This document shows, one piece after another, positions 25,363 through 63,383 of a stretch of 64,000 nt of DNA (position 1 is the first letter of the stretch; each line of letters starts with the position of its first letter). The DNA lies in the NCBI RefSeq assembly GCF_035084215.1, contig NC_090359.1, positions 24,800,001-24,864,000 of the forward strand. The letters are read 5' to 3'. Under the pieces are notes generated by a model, which saw only the letters and a program-made list of their open reading frames with translations, was not told the origin of the DNA and did no database searches. Origin of the DNA: Heptranchias perlo. Its lineage: Eukaryota. The position numbers and the translations under genes are program-made.

Positions 25363-25399
25363 ATGCACGACGTGATAATCCTGGGAGCTGGGATCAGCG
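25363..25399 (+). CDS. MAO: MAO-like exon 1 ([13 protein letters not shown])
   Basis: Start of the GxGxxG dinucleotide-binding motif; G|GTGAGT phase-1 donor. Confidence 0.9.
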
Positions 25400-31300: not shown

Positions 31301-34300
31301 GCTGGCAGGCAGGCAGGTCTATAGCAACAGGAAGTCCTCTCCACCTGTTACTGTCATTCCCTAATTGTCTGGGCTACAGCAGTTCTTTAGGGAATGGACT
31401 TGTTTCTGAAACTGCGGACAACAAAACTCCCCCCTCTCCTCCCGAGACAATAATTGCTAACACCCCTAGGAGTCACCCCACCTTTTCTGGAGGGACATGG
31501 GGCCTGGTAACTGAGCCCAGGATGAGGAGGGTTGAACCTGGTACCTGGGTCTGTCACTGGGCACTGAACGTAATAACTCAACCCAGTTCCTGTTTAACAA
31601 AGACTCTTGTTTTGAATAAATATTTTTTTGATAGAAGTTTAACTATCGCTACGAATAAGATTAGTCCTTGACTTCCAGCTTTCTCCGTTCCAGGTCTGTC
31701 GGCTGCTAAACTTCTCAGTGAGATGGGACTCGACGTCCTGGTGCTGGAAGCCAGGGACAGAGTTGGTGGACGCACGCACACTTTGCATGTGAGAACATTG
31801 TCTATTTCGTCAGTTTTGTGTTCGTCAAGCTGAGGGGTGTTAGTGCTGGGAAGAGGACTCATCTCAATTTAGGTACTCAGTCCGGGTTAGATACAGAGTA
31901 AAGCTCCCTGTGCACTGTCCCATCAAACACTCCCAGGGCAGGTACAGCACGGGTTAGATACAGAGTAAAGCTCCCTCTACACTGTCCCATCAAACACTCC
32001 CAGGGCAGGTACAGCATGGGTTAGATACAGAGTGAAGCTCCCTCTACACTGTCCCATCAAACACTCCCAGGGCTGGTACAGCACGAGTTAGATACAGAGT
32101 AAAGCTCCCTCTACACTGTCCCATCAAACACTCCCAGGGCTGGTACAGCACGGGTTAGATACAGAGTAAAGCTCCCTCTACACTGTCCCATCAAACACTC
32201 CCAGGGCAGGTACAGCACGGGTTAGATACAGAGTGAAGCTCCCTCTACACTGTCCCATAAAACACTCCCAGGGCAGGTACAGCACGGGTTAGATACAGAG
32301 TAAAGCTCCCTCTACACTGTCCCATCAAACACTCCCAGGGCAGGTACAGCACGGGTTAGATACAGAGTAAAGCTCCCTCTACACTGTCCCATAAAACACT
32401 CCCAGGGCAGGTACAGCACGGGTTAGATACAGAGTGAAGCTCCGTCTACACTGCCCATAAAACACTCCCAGGGCAGGTACAGCACGGGTTAGATTCAGAG
32501 TGAAGCTCCGTCTACACTGCCCTATCAATGTGCCTCGGCCCCATACCTAGGAGAATGCTCCCTGCTCCCTATTGTGACCTTTTTCGGAGCGAGGGAGCAC
32601 AGAGCAGCAGCTTTCGACAGAGTCGGGTTTCGACAGAATCTATAATTGGGAATGTGGTGAGTGAGGGGATTCGGTGCAGTAAGGGGTGTGAGGTGCATTT
32701 GTTTAGACAGCGGAGAGGAGCGTCCCGAGAGCGGGTCACAGCAACAACAAACCAAACTGCAGTGTGACGTCACAGGGAAGGCAGGTAGGTGGTTGGTGGT
32801 GATTATCTCTGCTGTTTTCTTCTTTCTTAGGACTGTGCGCTCAGTAACTTATAGAATAAAACTAAATTTAAAAAAAAAATAACTAAACTTAATTTAATAA
32901 ATTAAACAAGGCCAGTACTTGGTTCAACCTAAAAATAATTTGATTGGCATTGTCGTAATCAATTAAATAAATAAAATAGTTATGACAGGGCAGGAGATGC
33001 AGCTGCAATATGTGGGAGCTGCTGGACAGTTTTGTCCAGGGCGACTACATTTGCGGTAAGTGTCTGCGGCTCGAGGAACTTCGGCTGGGAGTTGAGGGGC
33101 TGGAGTCCGAGCTGCAGATATTGCGAGGCATCAGGGAGGGAGAAAGTTACCTGGACACTTTGATCCAGGAGGCAGTCACGCCCCTTAGACTAAATACTGT
33201 CGAATTGGCATGTGGACAGGGACAGGAGGGTGTGACTGTGAGTGAGGCAGGTACGGGGATCCAGGAGGGAGCGTTGCAGGAGCCTCAGTCCCTGTGATTG
33301 TCCAATAGATACGAGGTCCTTGCAGCCCTTGTGGACGAGTGCAGTGACTGCAGGGAGGACGAGCAAACTGGCCATGGCACCGTGGTTCAGGGGGCCATTC
33401 AAGTGGGGGGAGTAAGAAGGAATGTGGTTGTTGTAGGTGACAGTATGGTCAGAGGGATAGACACTGTTCTCCGCAGCCAAGAGCGAGAGTCCCGAAGGCT
33501 GTGTTGCCTACCCGGTGCCAGGGTTAAGGACATCTCCTCAGGACTGGAGAGAAACTTGGAGTGGGAGGGGGAGGATCCAGTTGTCATGGTCCACGTAGGT
33601 ACCAACAACATAGGTAGGACTAAGAAAGAGGTTCTGCTGAGGGAGTTTGAGCAGCTAGGGACTAAATTAAAAAGCAGCACCACAAAGGTGATAATCTCCG
33701 GATTATTACCTGAGCCACGAGCAAATTGGCACAGGGTAAATCAGATCAGAGAGATGAATGAGTGCCTCAAAGATTGGTGTGGGAGAAGTGGGTTTTGATT
33801 CATGGGGCACTGGCATCAGTACTGGGGAAAGAGAGAGCTGTTCCGTTGGGACGGGCTTCACCTGAACCATGCTGGGACCAGTGTTCTGGCAAACCGAATA
33901 ACTAGGGCGGTAGAAAAGGCTTTAAACTAAATAGAGGCGGGGAGGGCTCAGGTGGGGCGAAGTTTAGATTGATAAAGAGAAAAGACAAGGAAGTAGTACA
34001 GGAAAGTGATTGGGTTAATGATAGACAGAGTGTGTCAGGAAGGGACAGAGCGTACAAACATAAGAGTGCACCAGCAAATGGGGCCGGGGTAGGAAAGAAT
34101 GGTAAAAAGACAAAATGAAAGGTTCTTTATCTGAATGCGCGCAGCATTCGTAATAAGATAGATGAATTGACGGCACAAATAGAAACAAATGGGAATGATC
34201 TCGTGGCCATTACAGAGACGTGGTTGCAAGGTGACCAAGGTTGGGAGCTAAATATTCAGGGTTATTTAACATTTCGGAAGGATAGGAGAAAAGGTAAAGG

Positions 34301-49300: not shown

Positions 49301-52300
49301 CCCTCCCTCCCTCGCGCGCTCCCTCTCCCTCCCTCCCTGGCGCGCTCCCTCCCTCTCCCTCCCTCCCTGGCGCGCTCCCTCTCCCTCCCTCCCTCGCGCG
49401 CTCCCTCTCCCTCCCTCCCTGGCGCGCTCCCTCTCCCTCCCGCCCTTTTGACTACCCTACTCGTTGGGGTCTCTCTGTTTCTCTCTCTCTCCCTCTTTCC
49501 CTCTCTCTCTATTACCCTGATCTTGGGAGGTCCGTCTCTCTCTGTTACCGTGTTTTTGTGCAGGGTTGGCCTCCCCGTGGTGGAGTGAAGCCTTTTCACC
49601 AGGCTGAGCTGGTCGGTGGGGCGGACTATTATGGTATGTTAACCGTGATGTCAGCCGGTAGCTCGGCTGAGCACTACGACTCTCTCCGGCGATTTGCTCT
49701 GCCGAGTCCTCGCTGCTAAATTCAGCTGCTCTGTCTCCCTGGCAGGTCCACAAAGATCCTGTTGGACATCTTCATCAAGACCGTGTTCTGCGTGGAAACG
49801 CACGAGATCTCGACGCTCTGCGTGCTGTGGGGAATACGGTGCGGGCAAGGCATTGAACGGATGAGCAATATATCTGGTGGGGCCCAGGTGAGGCAGTTAG
49901 TTCGAGGTTTGAGGGAAAGCCCCTCCTTGTTTCGTTCAGTAGCTGGCACTAGGGGTCACCAATCATCCAGGATTGCCCTGGAGTCTCCGAGATTTGAGGA
50001 TTGATTTCCAGGACACTGCTTTGAACATTTCCATTAATTATTGGAGATTGGGGGGGGGGGAAAGGTCAAGAGTCGGGTGACAAAGAATCAGGGAACGATA
50101 CAGCACAGAATGAGGCCATTCGGCCCATCGTGCCTGTGCTGGCTCTTTTGAAAGAGCTTATCCAATTAGTCCCACTCCCCCTGCTCTTTCCCCACAGCCC
50201 TGCAAATGTTTCCCCTTCAAGTATTTATCCAATTCCCTTTTGAAAGTTATTATTGAATCTGCTTCCAGCGCCCTTTCAGGCAGTGAATTCAAAATCGTAA
50301 CAACTCGCTGCGTTTATAAAAAAATTTCTCCTCATCTCCCCCTCTGGTTCTTTTGCCAATTTAAAAGTTGATTGTTACATGACTCACTGTCAGCCGTGGC
50401 CCAGTGGGCAGCTCTCTCGCCTCTGAGTCAGAAGGTCGAGGGTTCAAACCCCACTCCAGAGACTTGAGCACATAATCCAGGCCGGCACTCCCCAGTGCCA
50501 GTACCGAGGGAGTGCAGCACTGTCGGAGGCCCCGTCTTTCGGATGAGACGTTAAACCGAGGCCCCGCCTGCCCCCCTCAGGTGGATGTAAAAGGTCCCAC
50601 GGCCACTATCCAAAGAAGAGCAGGGGGGGAGTTCTCCCCGGGTGTCCTGGTCAATATTTACCCCTCAACCAACATCGCTAAAAATAGATTATCTGATGGC
50701 TTTCTCTCCGAGCCGCCATGATCTCATTGAATAATGGAGTAGGCTTGAGGGGCTGAATGGCCTGCCCCTTGTCCCGGTGACTCGTTGACCGTAACCGCGT
50801 CCGTTCCTTCTGCCTTGCAGGAGCGTAAGTTTGTCGGGGGAGCGCAGACGATCAGCGAGAGGCTGGCCGAGCGGATCGGGAGGGAGAGGGTCCGCTTGAG
50901 TTCGCCGGTGGTCAGAGTGGAGCAGGCGGGCGACGGCGTGACCGTCACCAGCGAAAGGGGCGAGACGTCTGTGGTGAGGAGCGCCCGGCTCCGGTGGAAG
51001 GCAGCGGAATCGTCTTGAGCGTGTTCCGGTGGGGAGAGGCCGGGTCTGAGTTTATGTACTGGGGAGGGGCGAGGGGCGAGGGGAGTGACCAGGTGTACTG
51101 GAGTCCAGGAACGCCGAGTGGCCTATCTCGGCAGTGCTGCCGCGGGGAGGAGACGGGCACGGACCAGAGTGGGGGATCGGATCTGGTGGGGCCTCCTCCT
51201 GGTCGAGGCCTGGGCGTAGGGCACACACCTGGCCTCTCTAACACGCAGCAATCCAGGGGCAAGGGGCGAGGTAATAATCTACTGGGGGGAAAAGAAAGGA
51301 ACTGTACACCAGGTAGAGGTAGATGCGAAGATTAGGAATCACTTCAACATCCATTAGTTCTCCTTGAGTCTTTTGATTATTCAATATTTTTAATGTTTCA
51401 TTATTAATGATCTCACGTTCAGTTTGATCAAGGTGCTGATCCCGACAGTGTGAGGGAGAGGGATTAACATCGGTAGAGATACAGTCAGTAACACAGGGCG
51501 CTGGGGGGAGAGGGGTTACTGAGTGACAGTGTGAGGGAGAGGGATTAACATCAGTAGAGATACGGTCAGTAACACAGGGCGCTGGGGGAGAGGGGTTACT
51601 GAGTGACAGTGTGAGGGAGAGGGATTAACATCGGTAGAGATACAGTCAGTAACACAGGGCTCTGGGGGAGAGGGGTTACTGAGTGACAGTGTGAGGGAGA
51701 GGGATTAACATCGGTAGAGATACAGTCAGTAACACAGGGCGCTGGGGGAGAGGGGTTACTGAGTGACAGTGTGAGGGAGAGGGATTAACATCGGTAGAGA
51801 TACAGTCAGTAACACAGGGCGCTGGGGGAGAGGGGTTACTGAGTGACAGTGTGAGGGAGAGGGATTAACATCAGTAGAGATACAGTCAGTAACACAGGGC
51901 GCTGGGGGGAGAGGGGTTACTGAGTGACAGTGTGAGGGAGAGGGATTAACATCAGTAGAGATACGGTCAGTAACACAGGGCGCTGGGGGAGAGGGGTTAC
52001 TGAGTGACAGTGTGAGGGAGAGGGATTAACATCAGTAGAGATACGGTCAGTAACACAGGGCGCTGGGGGAGAGGGGTTACTGAGTGACAGTGTGAGGGAG
52101 AGGGATTAACATCAGTAGAGATACAGTCAGTAACACAGGGCGCTGGGGGGAGAGGGGTTACTGAGAGACAGTGTGAGGGAGAGGGATTAACATCAGTAGA
52201 GATACAGTCAGTAACACAGGGCGCTGGGGGGAGAGGGGTTACTGAGTGACAGTGTGAAGGAGAGGGATTAACATCAGTAGAGATACAGTCAGTAACACAG

Positions 52301-55300
52301 GGCGCTGGGGGAGAGGGGTTACTGAGTGACAGTGTGAGGGAGCTGGATTAACATCAGTAGAGATACAGTCAGTAACACAGGGTGCTGGGGGAGAGGGGTT
52401 ACTGAGTGACAGTGTGAGGGAGAGGGATTAACATCAGTCGAGATACAGTCAGTAACACAGGGCCCTGGGGGAGAGGGGTTACTGAGTGACAGTGTGAGGG
52501 AGAGGGATTAACATCAGTCGAGATACAGTCAGTAACACAGGGCGCTGGGGGAGAGGGGTTACTGAGTGACAGTGTGAGGGAGAGGGATTAACATCAGTCG
52601 AGATACAGTCAGTAACACAGGGCCCTGGGGGAGAGGGGTTACTGAGTGACAGTGTGAGGGAGAGGGATTAACATCAGTCGAGATACAGTCAGTAACACAG
52701 GGCGCTGGGGGAGAGGGGTTACTGAGTGACAGTGCTGGGTCAGCCTGACCTTACGTTCACCACCCCCCTCCCCGTGGTTTGTCTCCCTAGGGTCGGTTTG
52801 CCATCTCGGCAGTGCCACATGCCATCCTGCAGATGATCCGTTTCCACCCTCCTCTGCCAGCCCGGAAGAGGCAGCTGATCCAACGCATGCCCATGGGGTC
52901 AGTCATCAAGACCGTTACCTTTTACGATAGAGCTTTCTGGAAAGAGAGAGGTAAGTCACCCGGGGCAACGGGGGGGGGCTGAGAAAAATAACCAAACAGC
53001 CCCAAAATCGAACTTTCAACTCCAGCATAGAGCAAGAGAGAGGGCTTCCCTCCACCTCCCCCCACTTTCATACAATCATAGAATGATACAGCACAGAAGG
53101 AGGCCGTTTGGCCCATCGAGCCTGTGCCGGCTCTTTGAAGAGCTATCCAATTAGTCCCACTCCCCCCTGCACTTTCCTCATAGCCCTGCAAATTTTTCCT
53201 TTTCAAGTATTTATCCAATTCCCTTTTGAAAGTTATTATTGAATCTGCTTCCACCGCCCTTTCAGGCAGCACATTCCAGATCATAACAACTCACTGCGTA
53301 AAAAAAAAAGTCCTCATCTCCCCTCTGGTTCTTTTGCCAATCATCTTAAATCTGTGTCCTCCGGTTACCGGCCCTTCTGCCACTGGAAACAGTTTCTCCT
53401 TATTTACTCTATCAAAACCCCTTCATGATTTTGAACACCTCTATTAAATCTCTCCTTAACCTTCTCTGCTCTAAGGAGAACAACCCCAGCTTCTCCAGTC
53501 TCTCCACGTAACTGAAGTCCCTCATCCCTGGTACCATTCTGGTAAATCTCCTCCGCACCCTCTCCGAGGCCTTGACATCCTTCCTAAAGTGCGGTGCCCA
53601 GAATTGAACACAATACTCCAGCTGGGGCCTAAATTTCTCCCTTCCTCTCCTGAAGGTGCTGCCTCCTTGCTGGGGTTCCATGACTGCCAGCTGGACCTCC
53701 CAGTTCTCGTCCTGCGTGGCCGTCCCTTACATGAGTATTGTGTCCAATTCTGGGCACCGCACTTTAGGAAAGATGTCAAGGCCTTGGAGAGGGTGCAGAG
53801 GAGATTTACTAGAATGGCACCAGGGATGAGGGACTTCAGTTATGTGGAGAGACTGGAGAAGCTGGGATTGTTCTCCTTAGAGCAGAGAAGGCTAAGGGGA
53901 GATTTAATCGAGGTGTTCAAAATCATGAAGGGGTTTTGATAGAGTAAATAAGAAGAAACTGCTTCCAGTGTCAGGTGTGCTGGTAACCAGAGCACACAGA
54001 TAATTGGCAAAAGAGCCATAGGGTGGATGAGGATTTTTTTTTAACGCAGCGAGTTGTGATGATCTGGAACGCGCTGCCTGAAAGGGCGGTGGAAGCAGAT
54101 TCAATAGTAACTTTCAAAAGGGAATTGGATAAATACTTGAAAAGGAAAAATTCGCTGAGCTATGAGGAAAGTGCAGGGGGAGTGGGACCAATTGGATAGC
54201 TCTTTCAAAGAGCCGGCACAGGCACGATGGGCCGAATGGCCTCCTCGTATGCTGTAAGATTCTGTATGAGGGTCGGGCCAGTGAGTAACGCCAGGCTGTA
54301 AGGGGATCACTGCCATCTCACCCATTGTCCACATTCTCGCTGCAGTTGGAAGGGAATAGAAGGTTGAATTATGGGGACTGGTTGCACAGACTTGGCTTGT
54401 ATTCCCATGAGAACAGAAGATCGAGGGGTGACCTGATCGAGTGTTTAAAACCTTAAAAGGATTTGATAGTTTCTCCGTATCGACCCTATTTCCTCTGGTG
54501 GGAGAATCAAGAACAAGGGGGCATGACCTTAAAATTAGAGCCAGGCCGTTCAGGGGTGATGTCAGGAAGCACTTCTTCACACAAAGGGGAGTGGGAATCT
54601 GGAATTCCCTCCCTCCCCAAATGGCTGTGGATGCTGGGGGACAATTGGAGCTTTCAAGACTGAGGTGGATAGGTTTTGGTTGGGTGAGGGTATCGCGGGA
54701 TAGGGAGCAAAGGCAGGTCAACGGAGTTGACGCGCATGATGTAATTGAATGGCAGAGCAGGCTCGAGGGGCTGAATGGCCTCCTCCTGTTACATAAGAAC
54801 ATAAGAAATAGGAGCAGGAGTAGGCCAATCGGCCCCTCGAGCCTGCTCCGCCATTCAACAAGATCATGGCTTATCTGATCCTATTGGTCCTTTCTTAGGG
54901 AGCTTCTGGTCTGCGTGGCTTAGCTGTTCACTGCTTCAACACGGTGTCAGCCGTGGCTCAGTGGGCCGCTCTCTCTCTTGCCTCTGAGTCAGAAGGTCGT
55001 GGGTTCGAGTCCCACTCCAGAGACTTCAGCATATAATCCAGGCCGACACTCCCAGTGCAGCGCTGAGAAAGTGCTGCACTGTCGGAGATGCTGTCTTTCG
55101 AATGAGACGTTAAACCCCGTCTGGCCTCTCGGGCGGGCGTATAAGACCCCACGGGCACGGAGAAGAGCAGGGAAGTTCTCCCCAGTGTCCTGGGGCCAAT
55201 ATTTATCCCTCAACCAACATCACTAAAAAAAACCAGATTATCTGGTCAAAATCACATTGCCGTTTGTGGGATCTTGCTGTGTATAAAATTGGCTGCTGCG

Positions 55301-58300
55301 TTTCCTACATTACAACAATGACTACAGCTAACGAAGCACCCTTGAAGTGTAATGTCCTGAGGCTGTGAAAGACGCTATATAAATGCAAGTCCTTTTTTCA
55401 GTGTGTTGAGCCTTTGAAGGAGCTGCTCTGCTCCTTTCATCGTTCGAGTCGGGTTAACCTCCTCTGTCCCTCCATCCCGCCCAGGGTTCAGTGGCTGTTC
55501 CATGTCGGACGTCGGGCCTGTCGATTTCAGTATCGATGACACAAAGCCCGATGGGAGTCACCCGGCCATAATGGGCTTCATCCAGGCAGGGACGGCGCGG
55601 AGACTGAGCCTGGGAACTCTGGAGCAAAGGTCAGATCGAATGAGAATCTGCAAATTTACTCAACGGGATGATTCGGGATGAGGGGGAAGTCACGAGTGGA
55701 AACCAACAAAGACGCCCGTTTACTGTGCGAGAATCAGAACGGTCTCTGGTGGTTTGAGAGAGTGTTGTGCTGTTGTGACTGTCCAATCCCTGGTGGAGAG
55801 GGGCTTTTGGGATGGTGTGACTTTCCAATCGGTGGTCATATGATGGGGTGCAGTTGATGTTTGGGACGTCCTGAGGATGTGACGCAGCAAAATATCCAGA
55901 TTCTTTATCTCTATTGCACCTTATGGCGGTTGGTGGCAGAGTAGTTGGGAGTCAAATTGGAAGAAACTAGTTCTAAAATCACCACGTTCAAGAATACGGC
56001 CAAGGACGTACTGCATGAGACCACCAAAGTTGAAAAGAGTAGGCGGGCAGACCGGATTAGAGCAAGAAATGATTATTAAAGGGTGACAAATTTGGGGTTT
56101 AAAAGCCTCTAGATTGTTGGAGGAAGGGGAGAGCGAGGGAGGGGAGGAGTTCTTTTTTGACGTCCTGGAGACAGAATGGGTTACGGTTGGAGATGGCAGA
56201 TAAATCTTGATGTTAACATGGGTGAGGATGCAGGGAGGAGGAAGAGATGTGGGGCGGGTGTGGAGGAGAAGAGAGCAAAGTTAAGAGGAGCGGTGACAAG
56301 AAAAGAGAGAGAGAGAGAGAGAGATTGGAGGTGAGATGGGATGTCGAACAGGTGACGAGCCCTCCAGGAATGTGAGGGAGCTCCGACAGCTTGTGCGAAA
56401 GTTTTAATGTCTGTTCTTGTCGTTTGGAGATATCCAGACCTTTAATTTTCTTTCTTTATTACTAGGAAGGAATCTGTGTGCCAACATTATGCCAAAATCT
56501 TTAAGATGGAGGAGTTTTTGAATGTGAGTGGTGAACCCTGATAATCCTCCTCTCCAATTCGGGAGCAAGTGTTCAGAGCAAACATGCTCCCACAAAGAGA
56601 AAGGTTGGGACTGTCCCGGGAGCATAAGGCAAAAAAGGGAAGTTTATGTCTCACACCGAGAGCTCAATACTACAGAAAGCCCAGAGGAGTATAGAAAGTG
56701 CAGGGGTTAAATTAAGAAGGAAATTAGGAAAGCAAAGAGAGGGCGTGAAAAAATACTGGCAAGTAAAATTAAGGAAAGCCCAAAGATGTTTTATAAATAG
56801 ATAAAGAGCAAGAGGATAACTAAGGAAAGAGTCGGGCCTGTTCGAGACCAAAATGTGTGGAGGCGGAAGATGTGGGTATGGTTCTTAATGAATACTTTGC
56901 GTCTGTCCTCACAAAAAAGAGGGATGGTGCAGAGATTGAGTATTTCAAACACTCCTCCTTAACTACAATCAAGTTAGGTCAGATACGACCTTCCCTTAAC
57001 AAATCCAGGCTGACTGTCCTTGATTACTCCGTGCCTTTCTAAATGACGATTAAACATAGTGAGAGAGGAAGTATTAAGGGGTTTAGCATCTTTGAAAGTA
57101 GATAAATCGCCAGGCCCGGATGAAATGTATCCCAGGCTGTTAAAAGAAGCAAGGGAGGAAATAACAGAGGCCCTCACCATCATTTTCCAATCCTCCCTGG
57201 CTACAGGCGTGTGCTGGAAGATTGGAGGACTGCTGACGGTGTACCATTGTTTAAAAAGGGAGCGAGGGATAGACTGAGTAATTATAGGCCAATCAGCCTA
57301 ACCTCCGTGGAGGGCAAATTATCACAATCAATTCTGAGGGACAGTATTAATCGTCATTTAGAAAGGCACGGATTAATCAAGGACAGTCAGCATGGATTTG
57401 TTATGGGGAGGTCGTGTCTGACTAACTTGATTGAATTTTTTGAGGAGGTAACAAGGAGGGTCGATGAGGGTAACGCGTTTGATGTAGTCTACATGGATTT
57501 CATCAAGGCTTTTGACAAGGTCCCACATGGCAGACTGGTCAAAAAAGTAAAAGCCCATGGGTTCCAAGGGAAAGTGGCAAATTGGATCTAAAATTGGCTC
57601 AGTGGCAGGAAGCAAAGGGTAATGGGTGTTTTTGTGACAGGAAGGCTGTTTCCAGTGGGGTTCCGCAGGGCTCAGTAATAGGTCCCTTGCTTTTTGAGAC
57701 ATATTAATGATTTAAACTTAAATGTAGGGGGCATGATTAAGAAGTTTGCAGATGATACAAAAATTGGCCGTGTGGTTGATAGTGAGGAGGAAAGCTGTAG
57801 ACTGCAGGAAGATATCAATGGACTGGTCAGGTGGGCAGAAAAGTGGCAAATGGAATTCAATCCGGAGAAATGTGAGGTAATGCATTTGGGAGGGCAAACA
57901 AGGCAAGGGAGTACACAATAAATGGGAGGATACTGAGAGACGTAAAGGAAGTGAGGGACCTTGGAGTGCATGTCCACAGATCCCTGAAGGTAACAGGACA
58001 ATAGATAAGATGGTTAAGAAGGCATACGGGATACTTTCCTTTATTAGCTGAGGCATAGAATATAAGAGCAGGGAGGTTATGCTAGAACTGTATAAAACAC
58101 TAGTTAGGCGACAGCTTGAGTACTGCGTATAGTTCTGGTCACCACATGACAGGAAAGGTGTAATTGCTCTGGAGAGGGCACAGAGGAGTTTTACGAGGAG
58201 GTTGCCAGGACTGGAGAATTTTAGCCATGAGGAAAGATTGGATAGGCTGGGGTTGTTGTCTTTGGAACAAAGGAGGCTGAGGGGAGATGTAGGAGATGGG

Positions 58301-61300
58301 CGAGACATATTTGGGAAGTGAGAAGGTCAGGGATTAGAGACTGGTGAATGAGAGTGGGAGATGGTGGATGTGAGATCAGAGGCTAGTACAGAGATTCAGG
58401 AGCTGGTTAGTGTCGCTCCATTGGACACCTGTCACATGACATAGCCTCCTTTTAGAAGAGATTTTAAGATGTCTAATGGATGAGCCTTGTCCATCCAAAC
58501 CTCCTCCTTTCTCTTTACACCTCTTCAGCCTAAAGACTACATTGAGAAGAACTGGATGGAGGAGACTTACTCTGGGGGATGTTATTCAAGCATTTTTGGA
58601 CCCGGGGTCCTGACTGCCTTTGGAGAGTGAGTTCAGCCAACACAAGAATCTTTTCCTGCAATTCCAACTCTCTCATTCCAAGCAGACAGTTTTCTATTCT
58701 TCGAATCAGCTTTTGTGTTTTAACCACTTGTTGCTATAAAGGATAGAGAATTAAGCAAATGCTGAGCTAGCGCAGAGTGTGCACTCACTCCCCAGTGACC
58801 CAGTGTGTGTGGGATACACTCACTCCCCAGTGACCCAGTGTGTGGGATGCACTCACTCCCCAGTGACCCAGTGTGTGGGATACACTCACTCCCCGGTGAC
58901 CCAGTGTGTGGGATACACTCACTCCCCAGTGACCCAGTGTGTGGGATACACTCACTCCCCAGTGACCCAGTGTGTGGGATACACTCACTCCCCAGTGACC
59001 CAGTGTGTGTGGGAGACACTCACTCCCCAGTGACCCAGTGTGTGGGATACACTCACTCCCCAGTGACCCAGTGTGTGGGATACACTCACTCCCCAGTGAC
59101 CCAGTGTGTGGGATACACTCACTCCCCAGTGACCCAGTGTGTGTGGGAGACACTCACTCCCCAGTGACCCAGTGTGTGGGATACACTCACTCCCCAGTGA
59201 CCCAGTGTGTGTGGGATACACTCACTCCCCAGTGACCCAGTGTGTGGGATACACTCACTCCCCAGTGACCCAGTGTGTGGGATACACTCACTCCCCAGTG
59301 ACCCAGTGTGTGTGGGATACACTCACTCCCCAGTGACCCAGTGTGTGGGATACACTCACTCCCCAGTGACCCAGTGTGTGGGATACACTCACTCCCCAGT
59401 GACCCAGTGTGTGGGATACACTCACTCCCCAGTGACCCAGTGTGTGGGATACACTCACTCCCCAGTGACCCAGTGTGTGGGGGATACACTCACTCCCCAG
59501 TGACCCAGTGTGTGGGATACACTCACTCCCCAGTGACCCAGTGAGGGATACACTCACTCCCCAGTGACCCAGTGGGGGATACACTCACTCCCCGGGGACC
59601 CAGTGTGTGGGATACACTCACTCCCCAGTGACCCAGTGGGGGATACACTCACTCCCCAGTGACCCAGTGTGTGGGATACACTCACTCCCCAGTAACCCAC
59701 TGTGTGGGATACACTCACTCCCCAGTGACCCAGTGAGGGATACACTCACTCCCCAGTGACCCAGTGAGGGATACACTCACTCCCCAGTGACCCAGTGGGG
59801 GATACACTCACTCCCCAGTGACCCAGTGTGTGTGGGATACACTCACTCCCCAGTGACCCAGTGTGTGGGATACACTCACTCCCCAGTGACCCAGTGTGTG
59901 TGGGATACACTCACTCCCCAGTGACCCAGTGTGTGTGGGATACACTCACTCCCCAGTGACCCAGTGTGTGGGATACACTCACTCCCCAGTGACCCAGTGT
60001 GTGGGATACACTCACTCCCCAGTGACCCAGTGTGTGGGATACACTCACTCCCCAGTGACCCAGTGTGTGGGATACACTCACTCCCCAGTGACCCAGTGTG
60101 TGGGATACACTCACTCCCCAGTGACCCAGTGTGTGGGATACACTCACTCCCCAGTGACCCAGTGTGTGGGATACACTCACTCCCCAGTGACCCAGTGTGT
60201 GGGATACACTCACTCCCCAGTGACCCAGTGTGTGGGATACACTCACTCCCCAGTGACCCAGTGTGTGGGATACACTCACTCCCCAGTGACCCAGTGTGTG
60301 GGATACACTCACTCCCCAGTGACCCAGTGTGTGGGATACACTCACTCCCCAGTGACCCAGTGTGTGGGATACACTCACTCCCCAGTGACCCAGTGTGTGT
60401 GGGATACACTCACTCCCCAGTGACCCAGTGTGTGGGATACACTCACTCCCCAGTGACCCAGTGTGTGGGATACACTCACTCCCCAGTGACCCAGTGTGTG
60501 TGGGATACACTCACTCCCCGGTGACCCAGTGTGTGGGATACACTCACTCCCCAGTGACCCAGTGTGTGGGATACACTCACTCCCCAGTGACCCAGTGTGT
60601 GGGATACACTCACTCCCCAGTGACCCAGTGTGTGTGGGATACACTCACTCCCCAGTGACCCAGTGTGTGGGATACACTCACTCCCCAGTGACCCAGTGTG
60701 TGGGATACACTCACTCCCCAGTGACCCAGTGTGTGGGATACACTCACTCCCCAGTGACCCAGTGTGTGGGATACACTCACTCCCCAGTGACCCAGTGTGT
60801 GTGGGATACACTCACTCCCCAGTGACCCAGTGTGTGTGGGATACACTCACTCCCCAGTGACCCAGTGTGTGTGGGATACACTCACTCCCCGGTGACCCAG
60901 TGTGTGGGATACACTCACTCCCCAGTGACCCAGTGTGTGTGGGATACACTCACTCCCCAGTGACCCAGTGTGGGGGATACACTCACTCCCCAGTGACCCA
61001 GTGTGGGGGATACACTCACTCCCCAGTGACCCAGTGTGGGGGATACACTCACTCCCCAGTGACCCAGTGTGTGGGGGATGCACTCACTCCCCAGTGACCC
61101 AGTGTGTGGGATACACTCACTCCCCAGTGACCCAGTGTGTGGGATACACTCACTCCCCAGTGACCCAGTGTGTGTGGGATACACTCACTCCCCAGTGACC
61201 CAGTGTGAAGGACCTGCCCATGTTCTATTGACCAAATTATGTTCTTTATCCATTTCCTCCCAATCAATCCTTGTTTTGTTGGGCTACTGCAATCAACAAC

Positions 61301-63383
61301 AACAACTTGTATTTATATAGCACCTTTAACGTAGTAAAACGTCCCAAGGGGCTTCACAGGAGTGATTATCAAACAAAATTTGACACCGAGCCACATAAGA
61401 ACATATTGGGACAGGTGACCAAAAGCTCAAAGAAGCTACTTTTTTGGTCAAGTTGGTCGGGTTTAGGGAGCGTCTTAAAGGAGGAGAGAGAGAGAGGTTT
61501 AGGGAGGGAATTCCAGAGCTTAAGGCCTAGGCAGCTGAAGGCCTGGCCGCCAATGGTGGAGCGAAGGAAATCGGCAAAGCGCAAGAGGGCAGAATTTGAG
61601 AAGTGTGGTGATCTCGTAGGGCTGGAGGAGGTTGCAGAGGTAGGGAGTTTTTTAAAAAGAATTTCTGCATTGAAGATGTGACAATGTAGCTTATCTGTTT
61701 GCTTTGCAAAAATCCTTAAGATCATAATTGACTACTCATTAGCACCGAAGGTTTTCCACCTTTATTAGTTCTCACGCCCTGTGTGAGAATCTCTGGTGTT
61801 CCCGAGACAGCGGTCATGCGATCAGGATATTGTCTGTTGGCATTTCATGTCGCTCCTTGCTTTCGAGGGAGGCGGGCCCACCCTTCGCTGTGCGACTCTC
61901 CCTAGCGGCGCAAATGAGATGCGCGCTCCGCGGAATAACCTCTGCCGCAAACATCGACAAACGAGCCTGCGGTTAATTTCCAAGTAAAGAACGCGGTTAA
62001 CCGCCGGCGTGAAACCAAACGGTCCGAGACACGGGACGCCCCCCGGCTCCCAACGCACCGTGCCCCTGAGCTGCCTCACTGCAAGTCCCACTCCAGAGAC
62101 TTGAGCACATAATCCCAGGCCGACACTCTCTCAGTGCCGGTACTGAGGGAGCGCTGTGCTGTCGGAGGTGCCGTCTTTCAGATGAGACGTCAAACCGAGG
62201 CCCCCGTCTGCCCCTCTCGGGTGGACGTAGAGGATTCCCACGGACAATATTTCGAAGAAGAGCAGGGGAGTTCTCCCCCGGTGTCCAAAGTCCGCATTAA
62301 TCCCTCTACCAACATCACTAAACCAGATTATCAGATCATTATCACGTTGCTGTTTGTGGGACCTTGCTGTGCGCAAATTGGCTGCCACGTTTCCTACATT
62401 ACAACAGTGGCTACACTTCAAAAAAGTACTTCATTGGCTGTAAAGCGCTTTGGGACGTCCTGAGGTCGTGAAAGGCCCTAGATAAATGCAAGGTTCTTTT
62501 TTGCTGTTTGTCACCCCAAGATTAAGGATTAGCTTTTAATTCTGTTCGAACATGTGGGCGATATTGTGGTATTGCGGACCCCACTCGGGTTAAGTGAACA
62601 CCTCCGATCCTTTGGGCACCAGCTGACCCACACTGATGACTGATGCTCTGTCACTCCGCCTCCAGTGCCCTGCGCCAGCCTGTTGGCAGGATCCATTTTG
62701 CGGGGACGGAATTGGCCGATGAGTGGATTGGTTACATGGACGGGGCAGTGCAGTCGGGCGAGAGGGCGGCTCGAGAGGTGAGTGGACCTCTTCTTAGTTA
62801 AGGACGCACGTGGTTTGGGGGAGGGGATCGATGGGATGTGACTGCCCTAACCCTGGTGGGTTTGAGATGGTTTATCACTGGCAAGCCCCTCCTTGGTCTT
62901 GAGCAGGTAATCTGGGGCTGGCACTCTGGGGCAGTACCGAGGGAGTGCTGTGCGAGCCCCAATACTGTCTTTGCCCGACTTTCCAGCCGGGGCATCGCGT
63001 GGTTAACGCTGGCTGATCGCTGCCCCCACGAGCCAAGAGGTCCTGAGGTCAATTGTACGGTCCGCCATTGCTGCCTGGATGCAGTCGGCTGACCGGGCGC
63101 AGACTGGGGACAGAATCTGGCACATTCTCGTGTGAATCTTAGAACAACTAGCAAGTAATCAAAGACAATAACGTCTCCATGTTTACAGATATTGCTCGAG
63201 CTCGGAAAAATTCCCGTGGATGAAACCTTCCAGCCTGAACCACCACCACCCGCTGACGTCTCGCTCAACCCGACGGAGAGCTCCTGGTTGACGGGCGCGC
63301 TGCCCTCAGTAGACACCCTCCTACGATTCGGTGGGATTGCCCTAGCTGCTGGCCTGGCCTGGTTTTTCCAGTCAAAGCTTTGA
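25363..63383 (+). CDS. MAO: Flavin-containing monoamine oxidase-like protein (divergent MAO paralogue), 13 coding exons, 509 aa
   Basis: join(25363..25399,31694..31788,44719..44856,45877..45981,48198..48289,49746..49887,50821..50973,52791..52950,55485..55629,56466..56523,58529..58626,62666..62777,63189..63383) = 1530 nt, all GT-AG, in frame; [56 protein letters not shown]. Confidence 0.95.
25735..26448 (-). mobile_element. LINE 3' fragment, same family as 23669-24581
   Basis: ORF 25880..26356 is nearly identical to the C-terminal part of ORF 23531..24436. Confidence 0.88.
26470..26935 (+). mobile_element. CR1 3' fragment
   Basis: ORF 26473..26856 is the CR1 ORF2 C-terminus. Confidence 0.9.
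27520..27805 (-). mobile_element. DeuSINE fragment
   Basis: tRNA-like head and central domain as in the other copies. Confidence 0.75.
28030..28490 (+). repeat. G-rich low-complexity tract (GGGGTTAGCGGG / GGGGT units), G-quadruplex-prone
   Basis: Dozens of G3-G7 runs with short loops. Confidence 0.85.
29388..31036 (-). mobile_element. 5'-truncated CR1 (same family as the intact element at 38139-43795) nested in an older CR1 tail (~29030-31220)
   Basis: ORF 29690..31069 is almost identical to the RT of 40763..43711; host GTTGAGGCGAATATCAT|...|ATGGATGCATTTAAGGGG is split. Confidence 0.93.
31694..31788 (+). CDS. MAO: MAO-like exon 2 (LSAAKLL...[15 protein letters not shown])
   Basis: ttccag| acceptor, CAT|GTGAGA donor, 95 nt. 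Confidence 0.95.
31884..32522. repeat. 67-bp minisatellite, ~9.5 copies
   Basis: GGGTTAGATACAGAGTAAAGCTCCCTCTACACTGTCCCATCAAACACTCCCAGGGCAGGTACAGCAC in tandem. Confidence 0.95.
35001..36432 (-). mobile_element. 5'-truncated CR1 nested in the host CR1
   Basis: ORF 35084..36385 is an uninterrupted RT; (TATGACTC)n tail; GTCA on both flanks. Confidence 0.93.
37033..37624 (-). mobile_element. One-ended PIF/Harbinger fragment with a Myb/SANT exon
   Basis: Terminus GGGCCCGATTTTAGG, TATTTAAAG, then [12 protein letters not shown]...AWLEVAEEV...[16 protein letters not shown]|GTGAGT. Confidence 0.72.
38150..39500 (+). repeat. 5' UTR tandem monomer array of the CR1 (~22 units of ~53-73 bp)
   Basis: GAGCGGAGGGAGCGTCCGATAAAAGGCGGGATTTCAGAGCGCTGAG(AACAGCTGAG)AGGAGCC repeated. 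Confidence 0.93.
39816..40763 (+). CDS. CR1 ORF1p: Zn-finger, leucine zipper and SGNH esterase
   Basis: CSSC...CGKC; [11 protein letters not shown]; GDS, GTND, DGLH esterase blocks. Confidence 0.92.
   Translation: MAGDPRAVSCSSCEMWEFRAPSCIPDSFTCGKCVQLQLLFDRLTALELRMDSLWSIRDAEKVVDSTFSELVTPQIKITEGDSEWVTNRQRKSRKAVQGSPAVISLQNRYTVLDTVGGDGSPGEGGSGQVHGTVAGSTAQEGRKKSGRAIVIGDSIVRGIDRRFCGRNRDSRMVCCLPGARVKDVSERLQDILEGEGEQPVVVVHIGTNDIGKKQDEVLQAEFRELGVKLKSRTSKVVISGLLPVPRASQSRNDRIAKMNTWLERWCKREGFKFLGHWNRFWGRWDQYKLDGLHLGRTGTNVLGGVFASAVGEGLN
40763..43711 (+). CDS. CR1 ORF2p: AP endonuclease and reverse transcriptase
   Basis: NARS, ITETW, YRPP, GDFN, SDH; [31 protein letters not shown]; no stop in 982 aa. Confidence 0.96.
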   Translation: MWQGDGNRCRKSVGNKMVTETKGSKGECTEHDRTDGLRKQGKDQGKSRLNCIYFNARSLMGKADELRAWMGTWDWEVIAITETWIREGQDWQLNVPGYRCYRKDRAGGKRGGGVAFLIRENITAVVRGDISEGSPTKSIWVELKNKKGEITLIGLYYRPPNSQREIEEQICKEITDSCKKNRVVIVGDFNFPNIDWDSHSIRGLDGEKFVECIQEEFLIQYVDGPTREGAKLDLLLGNKEGQVTEVLVRDHFGTSDHNSISFKIAMEKDRSGPKVKILNWGKANFDGIRQELSEVDWESLLAGNGTSGKWEAFKSVLTRVQGKHIPYKVKGKAGRSREPWMTREIEALVKKKKEAYDMHRQLGSSGSLEEYRDCRSRVKREIRRAKRGYEIALADQAKVNPKSFYKYIKGKRVTRERVGPLKDQQGHLCAEPQEMGEILNEYFTSVFTVEKSMDVRELGEINSDVLRSVHITEREVLEVLTRIKVDKSPGPDEMYPRTLWEVREEIAGPLAEIFESSTATGEVPEDWRVANVVPLFKKGGREKPGNYRPVSLTSVVGKLLEGILRDRIYRHLERQGLIRNSQHGFVRGKSCLTNLIEFFEGVTKKIDEGCAVDVVYMDFSKAFDKVPHGRLLHKVKSHGIQGEVANWIQNWLDDRRQRVVVEGCFSNWMPVSSGVPQGSVLGPLLFVIYINDLDENLGGMVSKFADDTKIGGIVDSEEGYLGLQRDLDQLGQWADEWQMEFNLDKCEVMHFGRSNRARTYSVNGRALGRVIEQRDLGVQIHSSLKVESQVDGVVKKAFGMLGFIGQNIECRSWDVLLKLYRALVRTHLEYCVQFWSPYYRKDIIKLERVQKRFTRMLPGLDGLTYRERLDRLGLFSLESRRLRGDLIEIYKIMRGIDKVDSQNLFPKVGESITRGHRFKVRGERYKRVQRGNFFTQRVVSVWNELPEAVVEAGTILSFKKHLDSYMGKMGIEGYGPSAGNWD
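44385..44549. other. Assembly gap (165 N)
   Basis: N run following a CT-rich tract. Confidence 0.99.
44719..44856 (+). CDS. MAO: MAO-like exon 3 ([26 protein letters not shown]...)
   Basis: ggcag| acceptor, CAG|GTAAAT donor, 138 nt. Confidence 0.95.
45877..45981 (+). CDS. MAO: MAO-like exon 4 ([24 protein letters not shown]...)
   Basis: tttcag| acceptor, GAG|GTGCGT donor, 105 nt. Confidence 0.93.
46560..47465. repeat. Alternating purine-pyrimidine minisatellite (31-bp unit CACAAACGCGCGCGCGCACGTACATGCGTGC, plus CA tracts)
   Basis: Directly visible; explains the repetitive ORFs in all six frames. Confidence 0.93.
47680..48105 (+). mobile_element. tRNA-derived SINE (second family)
   Basis: GAGTTCAAATCCC B box, GGGAAGGAAACCTGCCGTC core, CTCACCACCA...TAGGGATGGGC tail. 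Confidence 0.78.
48198..48289 (+). CDS. MAO: MAO-like exon 5 ([31 protein letters not shown])
   Basis: ttgcag| acceptor, GA|GTACGG phase-2 donor, 92 nt. Confidence 0.93.
48636..49441. repeat. 26-bp C-rich minisatellite (CTCCCTCTCCCTCCCTCCCTGGCGCG), ~30 copies
   Basis: Directly visible; the G-rich minus strand is G4-prone. Confidence 0.95.
49746..49887 (+). CDS. MAO: MAO-like exon 6 ([22 protein letters not shown]...SGGAQ)
   Basis: ggcag| acceptor, CAG|GTGAGG donor, 142 nt. Confidence 0.93.
50390..50700 (+). mobile_element. DeuSINE, preceded by a minus-strand CR1 tail (~50095-50360)
   Basis: tRNA head GGTTCAAACCCC and central domain. Confidence 0.8.
50821..50973 (+). CDS. MAO: MAO-like exon 7 ([16 protein letters not shown]...)
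   Basis: ttgcag| acceptor, GTG|GTGAGG donor, 153 nt. Confidence 0.93.
51443..52735. repeat. 80-bp minisatellite, ~16 copies
   Basis: GACAGTGTGAGGGAGAGGGATTAACATCAGTAGAGATACAGTCAGTAACACAGGGCGCTGGGGGAGAGGGGTTACTGAGT in tandem. Confidence 0.95.
52791..52950 (+). CDS. MAO: MAO-like exon 8 (GRFAISAVP...[22 protein letters not shown])
   Basis: ccctag| acceptor, G|GTAAGT donor, 160 nt. Confidence 0.95.
53070..54270. mobile_element. Head-to-head inverted pair of CR1 3' fragments
   Basis: Minus copy ~53070-53628 and plus copy ~53731-54270, same family. Confidence 0.88.
54360..54880 (+). mobile_element. Degenerate CR1 3' fragment abutting a minus-strand CR1 tail
   Basis: ORF 54441..54878 ([25 protein letters not shown]...WNSLP). 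Confidence 0.8.
54945..55400 (+). mobile_element. Near full-length DeuSINE
   Basis: GGCTCAGTGG A box, GGTTCGAGTCCC B box, central domain, tail ...CTATATAAATGCAAGTC. Confidence 0.85.
55485..55629 (+). CDS. MAO: MAO-like exon 9 (equivalent to MAOA/B exons 9+10)
   Basis: [48 protein letters not shown]; ccag| acceptor, AG|GTCAGA donor, 145 nt. Confidence 0.93.
56466..56523 (+). CDS. MAO: MAO-like exon 10 ([19 protein letters not shown])
   Basis: Long pyrimidine tract then actag|, AAT|GTGAGT donor, 58 nt; phases 2/0 fit the neighbours. Confidence 0.92.
56620..58290 (+). mobile_element. Degenerate CR1 RT fragment with an internal inverted segment
   Basis: ORFs 57059..57277, 57211..57591 and 57694..57921 (KSPGPD, YRPISL, QHGF, FADD) with frameshifts. 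Confidence 0.9.
58529..58626 (+). CDS. MAO: MAO-like exon 11 ([33 protein letters not shown])
   Basis: SGGCY covalent-FAD motif; cttcag| acceptor, GA|GTGAGT donor, 98 nt. Confidence 0.96.
58776..61207. repeat. 33-bp minisatellite (GGGATACACTCACTCCCCAGTGACCCAGTGTGT), ~72 copies
   Basis: Directly visible; units vary mainly by +/- GT. Confidence 0.97.
62080..62500 (+). mobile_element. DeuSINE
   Basis: Central domain and L2-like tail as in the other copies. Confidence 0.85.
62666..62777 (+). CDS. MAO: MAO-like exon 12 ([37 protein letters not shown])
   Basis: ctccag| acceptor, GAG|GTGAGT donor, 112 nt. Confidence 0.96.
63189..63383 (+). CDS. MAO: MAO-like exon 13 (equivalent to MAOA/B exons 14+15), ends ...LAWFFQSKL*
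   Basis: tttacag| acceptor; ILLELGKIP...QPEP...LPSV...hydrophobic tail; TGA at 63381-63383. Confidence 0.93.
   Translation: MLLELGKIPVDETFQPEPPPPADVSLNPTESSWLTGALPSVDTLLRFGGIALAAGLAWFFQSKL

Follow-up and report, generated by a model that had tools for sequence, protein, structure and literature searches.

Monoamine oxidase (MAO) is the main breakdown route for monoamine transmitters and a major drug target. A 64,000-nt stretch of Heptranchias perlo contig NC_090359.1 (the whole of which we call the window) contains a gene for a divergent member of this family, and the question raised by this locus is which vertebrate MAO lineage the gene represents. Based on alignments and phylogeny, it is very probably the H. 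perlo copy of a third vertebrate MAO lineage, which is neither MAO A/B nor MAO F and which has an orthologue in lampreys. For this analysis, we propose the labels T for the group of the window gene, LT for the second lamprey MAO, and L2 for the other lamprey MAO. In the 2025 account by Merello Oyarzun et al. (Genome Biol Evol; PMC11833248), non-tetrapod jawed vertebrates have MAO A/B and MAO F, while lampreys have a single gene. The accession table of that paper contains no T-group accession, and its only lamprey entry is XP_032834967 (L2 type). No description of a third lineage in vertebrates, or of a second gene in lampreys, is found there, in the metazoan survey of Goulty et al. 2023, which recovers one bilaterian MAO clade, or in the results of further full-text searches. 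The enzyme family is known; what is unexpected is the evolutionary position of T, together with one lineage-specific change in the active site.

All full-length analyses were run on the database protein P0155 (XP_067828270.1, "amine oxidase [flavin-containing] B-like isoform X1", Heptranchias perlo, 30-Mb contig), to which the window exon pieces and split codons are all identical in a piece-by-piece script comparison. Cluster look-ups place two other MAO kinds in the same shark: a MAO A/B (P0410, 522 aa, 83-Mb contig), which shares a ≥90% cluster with MAO A/B proteins of other cartilaginous fish, and a MAO F (P0388, 67-Mb contig). The T protein of H. perlo is only 46–48% identical to the F and A/B proteins of its own species, which are 69% identical to each other. 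All three kinds are also found in Carcharodon, Cetorhinus, and Heterodontus. Two Scyliorhinus species have T and MAO F in the look-ups, and a MAO A/B accession for S. canicula is listed in the table of the MAO F paper (PMC11833248). Overall, at least seven shark species from four orders have T, in every species on small sequences (13–36 Mb). LT is found in Petromyzon marinus (XP_032807743), Lampetra planeri (XP_078453945), L. fluviatilis, and Lethenteron reissneri, and T and LT are reciprocal best matches. In sea lamprey and river lamprey, we observe two distinct MAO genes each on different contigs, P0271/P0156 and P0202/P0285 (XP_032807743-type, XP_032834967-type). H. perlo also has a second 509-aa copy of the window product on a 236-kb scaffold (P0287, XP_067834924.1), which has two differences (I119V, G493S) and is probably an unplaced haplotig, or possibly a very recent duplicate.

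The main tree comprises 57 rows and was inferred under the LG+C20 model with posterior mean site frequencies (PMSF), and approximately unbiased (AU) tests were performed on constrained IQ-TREE searches under the same PMSF model. The window gene clusters with those of six other shark species to form T, and T+LT is recovered with supports of 100/100 in both this tree and a 32-row tree. In the 57-row tree, (L2,(F,A/B)) is a separate clade (100/99). When the 32-row tree is rooted, the canonical vertebrate MAOs group with those of an annelid, Mytilus, and Crassostrea at 100/99, to the exclusion of T+LT. Topologies that place T with F (log-likelihood deficit, dlnL, of 183; p 6e-6), T with A/B (dlnL 181; p 8e-5), or the gnathostome genes in a clade without lampreys (dlnL 164; p 1e-5) are rejected by the AU test, as are a lamprey-only duplication (dlnL 148; p 5e-4) and a single clade of all vertebrate MAOs (dlnL 73; p 2e-4). 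The sequence-only reading of this stretch had held that the gene is not the canonical MAO A/B orthologue, which is borne out by the separate P0410 on another contig and the rejection of T with A/B. It had left open whether the gene belongs to an additional fish MAO clade; given the separate P0388 and the rejection of T with F, it does not, and the lineage appears to be new.

The alignments also speak to the direction of change. The short form of the loop at MAO-B positions 319–320, in which the window protein has two fewer residues than MAO-B, is found in T, LT, amphioxus, hemichordates, starfish, most molluscs, the nemertean, coral, choanoflagellate, and euglenozoan, while the longer form is found only in L2, F, A/B, A, and B and in Mytilus, Crassostrea, and an annelid. 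The motif N-V-N-V-T-S-E (170–176) and a Q/C-C/A-G-G loop (191–194) are present only in the canonical vertebrates, Mytilus, and Crassostrea, with the annelid row having neither. T and LT lack all three derived canonical marks (the two-residue insertion at 319–320, NVNVTSE, and QCGG), and T instead has T-V-F-C-V and C-G-Q-G; its motif at 171–175 and its loop at 191–197 are common to lamprey, amphioxus, mollusc, coral, choanoflagellate, and euglenozoan sequences. Because these states are shared with invertebrate and non-animal outgroup MAOs, the short loop and most of the cavity differences represent retained ancestry, and on this alignment, it is the canonical vertebrate group that has changed at these sites. 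T and LT would thus keep the ancestral form of the enzyme, as in amphioxus, many molluscs, and the non-animal outgroups, while the canonical vertebrate MAOs (L2, F, A/B, A, and B) would have their three derived marks in common with some of the lophotrochozoan MAOs. The earlier description of a "2-aa deletion" in a "remodelled cavity" therefore needs to be turned around in part: the stretch is two residues shorter and the residue differences are real, but the short loop is the ancestral form rather than a loss in the window gene, and the direction of cavity change is largely reversed, with only the loss of Tyr188 being specific to sharks. At this position, six shark species have G, A, A, A, V, or M, whereas all other animal rows except the nemertean have Tyr. 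The gains of T+LT are a small residue at MAO-B position 184 and a four-residue tail starting with Q-S after the predicted membrane anchor.

The coding sequence of the window gene (1530 nt, 509 residues) is divided among 13 exons on the + strand, beginning with the ATG at 25363 and closing with the stop codon that ends at 63383 (Table 1). Each internal exon boundary is AG...GT, the phases are consistent, all 12 introns have canonical sites, and an in-frame stop lies 10 codons upstream of the ATG in exon 1. The complete 509-aa frame reported from the sequence alone is thus confirmed, as the 13 AG/GT-bounded exons yield a product identical to P0155 and the one assembly gap lies outside the coding sequence. 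No coding sequence is lost to this gap, as the join between exons 2 and 3 aligns without gaps to human MAO-B and to the orthologues. Because P0155 was itself predicted from the assembly of the same species, its identity to the window product is not independent support for the exon model; what supports it independently are the splice sites, the orthologues of six other sharks, which are collinear with it, and the spliced contigs described below. Eleven exons were found by inspection, exon 2 by motif, and the small exon 10, which the motif search missed, by tblastn with an oyster relative. Exon 8 was searched against a library of 1.8 billion proteins and exons 6 and 9 against solved structures. 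The exon 8 query led to a catshark relative, P0001, the sound N-terminal part of which led to P0155 in a word-index search. P0001 (S. canicula isoform X2, an NCBI model) is the 50%-cluster representative returned by the exon 8 library search; it omits the counterpart of the 58-nt exon 10 and is out of frame from exon 11 onward, with a spurious C-terminus. Human MAOA and MAOB have 15 exons each, compared to 13 coding exons in the window gene, in which exon 9 (145 nt) and the last exon (195 nt) each have the appearance of two canonical exons fused into one. Were this the case, the MAO lineages could also be told apart by where their introns lie.

The product is recognizable as an amine oxidase throughout. 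PF01593 (Amino_oxidase) covers residues 11–447 (profile 1–443 of 443; 243 bits versus a cut-off of 19.8), and HMMER aligns the full-length protein to human MAO-B with E = 1e-156, pairing residues 3–496 with 6–499. Identity of 46–48% along the entire enzyme leaves no doubt about the fold. In MAO-B numbering, E34, R42, Y60, Q206, K296, F343, W388, C397, Y398, and Y435 are kept, while the changes are P102V, F103I, W119I, L171T, C172V, W184C, Y188G, I198M, I199S, I316M, and Y326F. These calls agree among exon-by-exon alignments, the full-length HMMER alignment, and two multiple alignments; in a single-exon alignment, the equivalent of I199 could be either S or M, but the full-length and multiple alignments, in which no gaps occur over 183–207, resolve it as S. 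The dinucleotide-binding motif G-A-G-I-S-G is at residues 8–13, E31 and R39 align with MAO-B E34 and R42, and C393, within an S-G-G-C-Y motif, is by alignment the predicted attachment site of covalent 8-alpha-S-cysteinyl flavin adenine dinucleotide (FAD), equivalent to MAO-B C397. The aromatic cage and other expected residues (Y394, Y431, K294, Y57, Q203, F339, and W384) are also present. Full-length and exon alignments thus agree with the sequence-only reading on the seven flavin and catalytic residues that it listed as kept (Y60, Q206, K296, F343, C397, Y398, and Y435), and the five substitutions that it named (L171 to T, C172 to V, Y188 to G, I199 to S, and Y326 to F) hold in a formal alignment, the test that it had named beforehand. 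Six further changes (P102V, F103I, W119I, W184C, I198M, and I316M) extend its list. Its description of an intact gene holds as well, and the protein has all residues required of a covalent-FAD amine oxidase. LT and 5/6 shark orthologues also have the ten kept residues listed above. T proteins from sharks of different orders are 82–86% identical, while F and A/B proteins compared across the same pairs of species reach 87–92%; by this measure, T is conserved less than F and A/B but far from neutral.

In MAO-B, Phe168, Leu171, Ile199, and Tyr326 divide the entrance cavity from the substrate cavity, with Ile199 as a gate and Tyr326 as a wall, while the hydroxyl of Tyr188 forms hydrogen bonds with ligands near the FAD (PMC10302329). 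Relative to MAO-B, two of these four partition residues are smaller or polar in the window protein (L171 to T and I199 to S), and Tyr326 is Phe. The enzyme would be an FAD-dependent amine oxidase with the usual MAO chemistry. Its flavin would be attached covalently to Cys393, and the tyrosines Y394 and Y431 would form the aromatic cage in which the amine is oxidized, while K294 and Y57 keep their customary positions. The lining of the path to the flavin would differ, with a small polar gate (T168 and S196), Phe in place of Tyr326, an aliphatic entrance loop, and no Tyr188. With such an altered path, the range of amines and inhibitors likely differs from those of MAO A, B, or F. At the C-terminus, a 17-residue hydrophobic segment, which would hold the protein on a membrane, has a mean Kyte–Doolittle value of 1.69, inside the MAO A/B range (1.3–2.1). 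The tail past this anchor is short, with 4 residues and a charge of +1, versus 9–11 residues and charges of +2 to +4 in MAO A/B. The last three residues are -SKL in four shark species, -SRL in Cetorhinus, -SNL in Heterodontus, and -SGA in lampreys. Given the four-residue tail ending in -SKL, the cellular location may also differ. An S-K-L-type end might be read as a type 1 peroxisomal targeting signal (PTS1), but in the window protein, the tripeptide sits 1 residue past the predicted membrane anchor, making access by the import receptor doubtful.

The central part of the gene is transcribed. Four runs of one sample contain ~22% of the sampled words from 48100–53000. Across 49650–53000, a single contig in each of three runs (1347, 1354, and 1758 nt) covers exons 6–8 with 0 mismatches. 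These contigs join 49887 to 50821 (933 nt skipped) and 50973 to 52791 (1817 nt skipped) at GT..AG sites, corresponding exactly to introns 6 and 7, while the fourth run (X1) yields two shorter contigs of 409 and 325 nt with one splice joint each. The gene is thus transcribed and spliced as modelled across exons 6–8 in this sample. Words from the intron 6/7 repeats and LINE (long interspersed nuclear element) fragments are hugely abundant in the run contigs, with word depths of up to 10^5, and repeats related to these are probably widespread in the genome or transcribed.

Several observations weigh against the reading of the window gene given above. In the rooted 32-row tree, T+LT groups with amphioxus, a nemertean, and eight molluscs at only 80/85. 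T evolves ~1.5–2 times faster than F and A/B, and the stems in the 57-row tree are long (0.34 for T, 0.66 for LT, and 0.33 for the two jointly), such that a long-branch effect could account for part of the deep placement. The PMSF site frequencies derive from a guide tree, and the constrained searches for T+AB, T+F+AB, and LT+L2 stopped before completion, making their deficits upper bounds, although deficits of 148–181 are far beyond what more searching usually recovers. No T member is observed among the annotated proteins of rays, chimaeras, carpet sharks, hagfishes, and bony vertebrates, a comparison that covered annotated proteins only. Constraint is also not uniform across the lineage: the S. 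canicula protein P0151 (XP_038642899.1) lacks C397 (to G) and Y398 (to F). Finally, expression comes from one sample, the RNA nature of which is deduced from the spliced contigs. In S. canicula P0151, W187 (to C) and Y326 (to C) are also changed, while the congener S. torazame keeps C397, Y398, W187, and Y326; the S. canicula changes may represent a recent loss of function in one species.

The most serious competing explanation is that T+LT is a vertebrate-only duplicate, such as an ohnologue from an early genome duplication, of the ancestor of A/B and F, and that its kinship with invertebrate MAOs is an artefact. T would then have kept ancestral states while the canonical copy changed fast, and the few lophotrochozoans in the canonical group would have been drawn in by convergence or long branches. 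We consider this unlikely, even though the stems of T, LT, and the canonical clade are all long, the support for the T+LT/invertebrate group is limited, with an inner order that departs from the species tree (molluscs being nearer to T than amphioxus is), retained ancestral states alone cannot show kinship, and Goulty et al. 2023 recover one bilaterian clade. A single all-vertebrate clade is rejected by the AU test in a search that did finish, and the canonical clade and its Mytilus and Crassostrea relatives, united at 100/99, share the two-residue insertion, NVNVTSE, and a C-x-G-G loop, with the annelid sharing the insertion. Furthermore, oysters have one gene per group: Crassostrea gigas P0169 is canonical-like, while Saccostrea echinata P0012 is ancestral-like, and molluscs generally carry both. 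This distribution suggests that the split into two MAO groups is at least as old as bilaterians. The stronger proposal, on which our own confidence is evenly divided, is that vertebrates began with two anciently separated MAO kinds, of which the "invertebrate-type" survives only in lampreys and some sharks, while the canonical kind gave rise to L2, F, A/B, A, and B.

The other explanations concern the window gene itself. An incipient pseudogene, or a gene that no longer encodes an active amine oxidase and serves some other function or no function at all, would fit with the faster evolution of the window gene relative to its paralogues, the loss of Tyr188 in all sharks and of C397 and Y398 in S. 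canicula, the patchy-looking range among cartilaginous fish, and the truncated tail. We find this improbable given a frame that is open in seven sharks and four lampreys, other catalytic residues that are kept in 5/6 sharks and in LT, 82–86% identity across orders, correctly spliced transcripts, and canonical sites in 12/12 introns. A divergent cartilaginous-fish MAO F would be a natural first guess, as MAO F is reported in cartilaginous fish (PMC11833248) and the NCBI names of the T proteins ("A-like", "B-like") are uninformative, but it is a highly improbable one: the cartilaginous MAO F and A/B accessions of that paper fall in the F and A/B clusters here, with the MAO F ones in P0163 and P0164 (including P0388) and none corresponding to T. 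T+F is also rejected; T lacks the insertion and motifs of MAO F and has an S/F gate, where the MAO F rows have F/M or F/L; and neither CMC4 nor BRCC3 lies in the 25 kb upstream. Least credible of all is that the gene is the ordinary, sole MAO orthologue of H. perlo. This explanation has only family resemblance in its favor, while the canonical P0410 is on another contig, T+AB is rejected, and neither NDP nor EFHC2 lies within 25 kb upstream. Membership in a third vertebrate lineage with LT thus remains the reading that we favor.

If vertebrates did begin with two MAO kinds, the single-gene model of vertebrate MAO origin would have to be revised, and the shark gene, rather than human MAOA and MAOB, would be the one orthologous to the MAOs of amphioxus and many invertebrates. 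With no Tyr188 and an -SKL tail, the enzyme of the shark would in turn have a substrate range, and perhaps a location, unlike those of any studied MAO. The third shark lineage and second lamprey gene are already in public annotation under uninformative names, and recognizing them changes the reconstruction of the ancestral vertebrate MAO repertoire and bears on the question of which vertebrate gene truly corresponds to the MAOs of invertebrates. It also changes how lamprey expression data are read, as these, including the brain-expression analysis of the 2025 MAO F paper, assume a single gene. Finally, a natural MAO without Tyr188 and with an altered gate offers a useful comparison for work on structure–function and inhibitor selectivity.

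The region spanning 25363–63383 is repeat-rich (~50% G+C), with numerous open frames of CR1-type LINEs and large tandem arrays within introns (Table 1). A long CR1-type LINE occupies part of intron 2, and many shorter copies are found in other introns and upstream. The 25 kb upstream in the window contain only LINE fragments and one V-set immunoglobulin exon, which is the nearest non-repeat neighbor and is unlike the neighbors of MAO A/B or MAO F. None of NDP, EFHC2, CMC4, and BRCC3 is found within these 25 kb, and the window reaches only 617 nt downstream of the gene.

Table 1. Coding exons of the H. perlo T gene and other features of the window. Residues are numbered in the window protein, with MAO-B equivalents where stated.
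Feature	Coordinates	Strand	Description
V-set immunoglobulin exon	16804..17130	+	PF07686, E = 6e-6; ~8 kb upstream of MAO start
Exon 1	25363..25399	+	Residues 1–12 and first base of codon 13; starts GAGISG dinucleotide-binding motif; donor GTGAGT
Exon 2	31694..31788	+	Residues 13–44; E31, R39 = MAO-B E34, R42; AG acceptor, GTGAGA donor
CR1-type LINE, intron 2	38139..43795	+	Same strand as gene; also has a 315-aa upstream frame
LINE reverse-transcriptase frame	40763..43711	+	982 aa
Assembly gap, 165 N	44385..44549	.	In 12.9-kb intron 2; 12,596 nt past exon 2 donor, 169 nt before exon 3 acceptor
Exon 3	44719..44856	+	Residues 45–90; Y57 = MAO-B Y60
Exon 4	45877..45981	+	Residues 91–125; entrance-loop region; V99, I100, I116 replace MAO-B P102, F103, W119
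Tandem array, intron 4	46901..47462		31-nt unit x 17
Exon 5	48198..48289	+	Residues 126–155 and two bases of codon 156; donor GTACGG, phase 2
Tandem array, intron 5	48643..49446		26-nt unit x 31
Exon 6	49746..49887	+	Residues 156–203; T168, V169, C181, G185, M195, S196, Q203 = MAO-B L171, C172, W184, Y188, I198, I199, Q206
Exon 7	50821..50973	+	Residues 204–254
Tandem array, intron 7	51444..52734		80-nt unit x 16
Exon 8	52791..52950	+	Residues 255–307 and one base; K294 = MAO-B K296
Exon 9	55485..55629	+	Residues 308–355; short loop; M314, F322, F339 = MAO-B I316, Y326, F343
Exon 10	56466..56523	+	58 nt; residues 356–375
Exon 11	58529..58626	+	Residues 376–407; W384, C393, Y394 = MAO-B W388, C397 (covalent FAD site), Y398
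Tandem array, intron 11	58782..61207		33-nt unit x 73 copies
Exon 12	62666..62777	+	Residues 408–445; Y431 = MAO-B Y435
Exon 13	63189..63383	+	Residues 446–509 and stop; 17-residue hydrophobic segment, then four residues Q-S-K-L

When compared to known MAOs, the window protein is closest in form to LT, which consists of predicted lamprey proteins named "amine oxidase [flavin-containing] B-like". Like T, LT has the short 319–320 loop, a small residue at 184, a four-residue tail starting with Q-S, and the catalytic residues, but the two are only 54% identical, and LT keeps Tyr188, has an A/Y rather than an S/F gate pair, and ends in -SGA rather than -SKL. MAO F is the other non-A/B paralogue in cartilaginous fish and resembles T in its fold, the cysteine for covalent FAD, the aromatic cage, and a C-terminal anchor such as is predicted for T (PMC11833248). 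It was lost in tetrapods (PMC11833248), and T is likewise found outside tetrapods. The MAO F of tarpon is active and mitochondrial, with a Phe/Met gate pair (PMC11833248). Nevertheless, MAO F forms a separate clade and, in H. perlo, occupies a separate locus (P0388 versus P0155), with 48% identity to T. It has the two-residue insertion, NVNVTSE, QCGG, Tyr188, a Phe/Met or Phe/Leu gate, and a basic tail of 9–17 residues, none of which are present in T. Human MAO-B (1GOS and related structures) and MAO-A (2Z5X, 2BXR) are 46–48% identical to T over ~494 residues (E = 1e-156 and 1e-152, respectively), with two more residues at 319–320 and a tail of 9–10 residues after the anchor, versus four in T. 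The ancestral-type invertebrate MAOs, such as those of amphioxus (P0199), Potamilus (P0157), and Saccostrea (P0012), are 52–53% identical to T, which is above any canonical vertebrate MAO. They differ from T in keeping Tyr188, in having an aromatic residue or His at 184, and in their tails, but have in common with it the short loop, S/C-G-x-G at 191–194, x-V-[FYM]-[CAT]-[VAS] at 171–175, and a gate pair made up of a small residue and an aromatic one.

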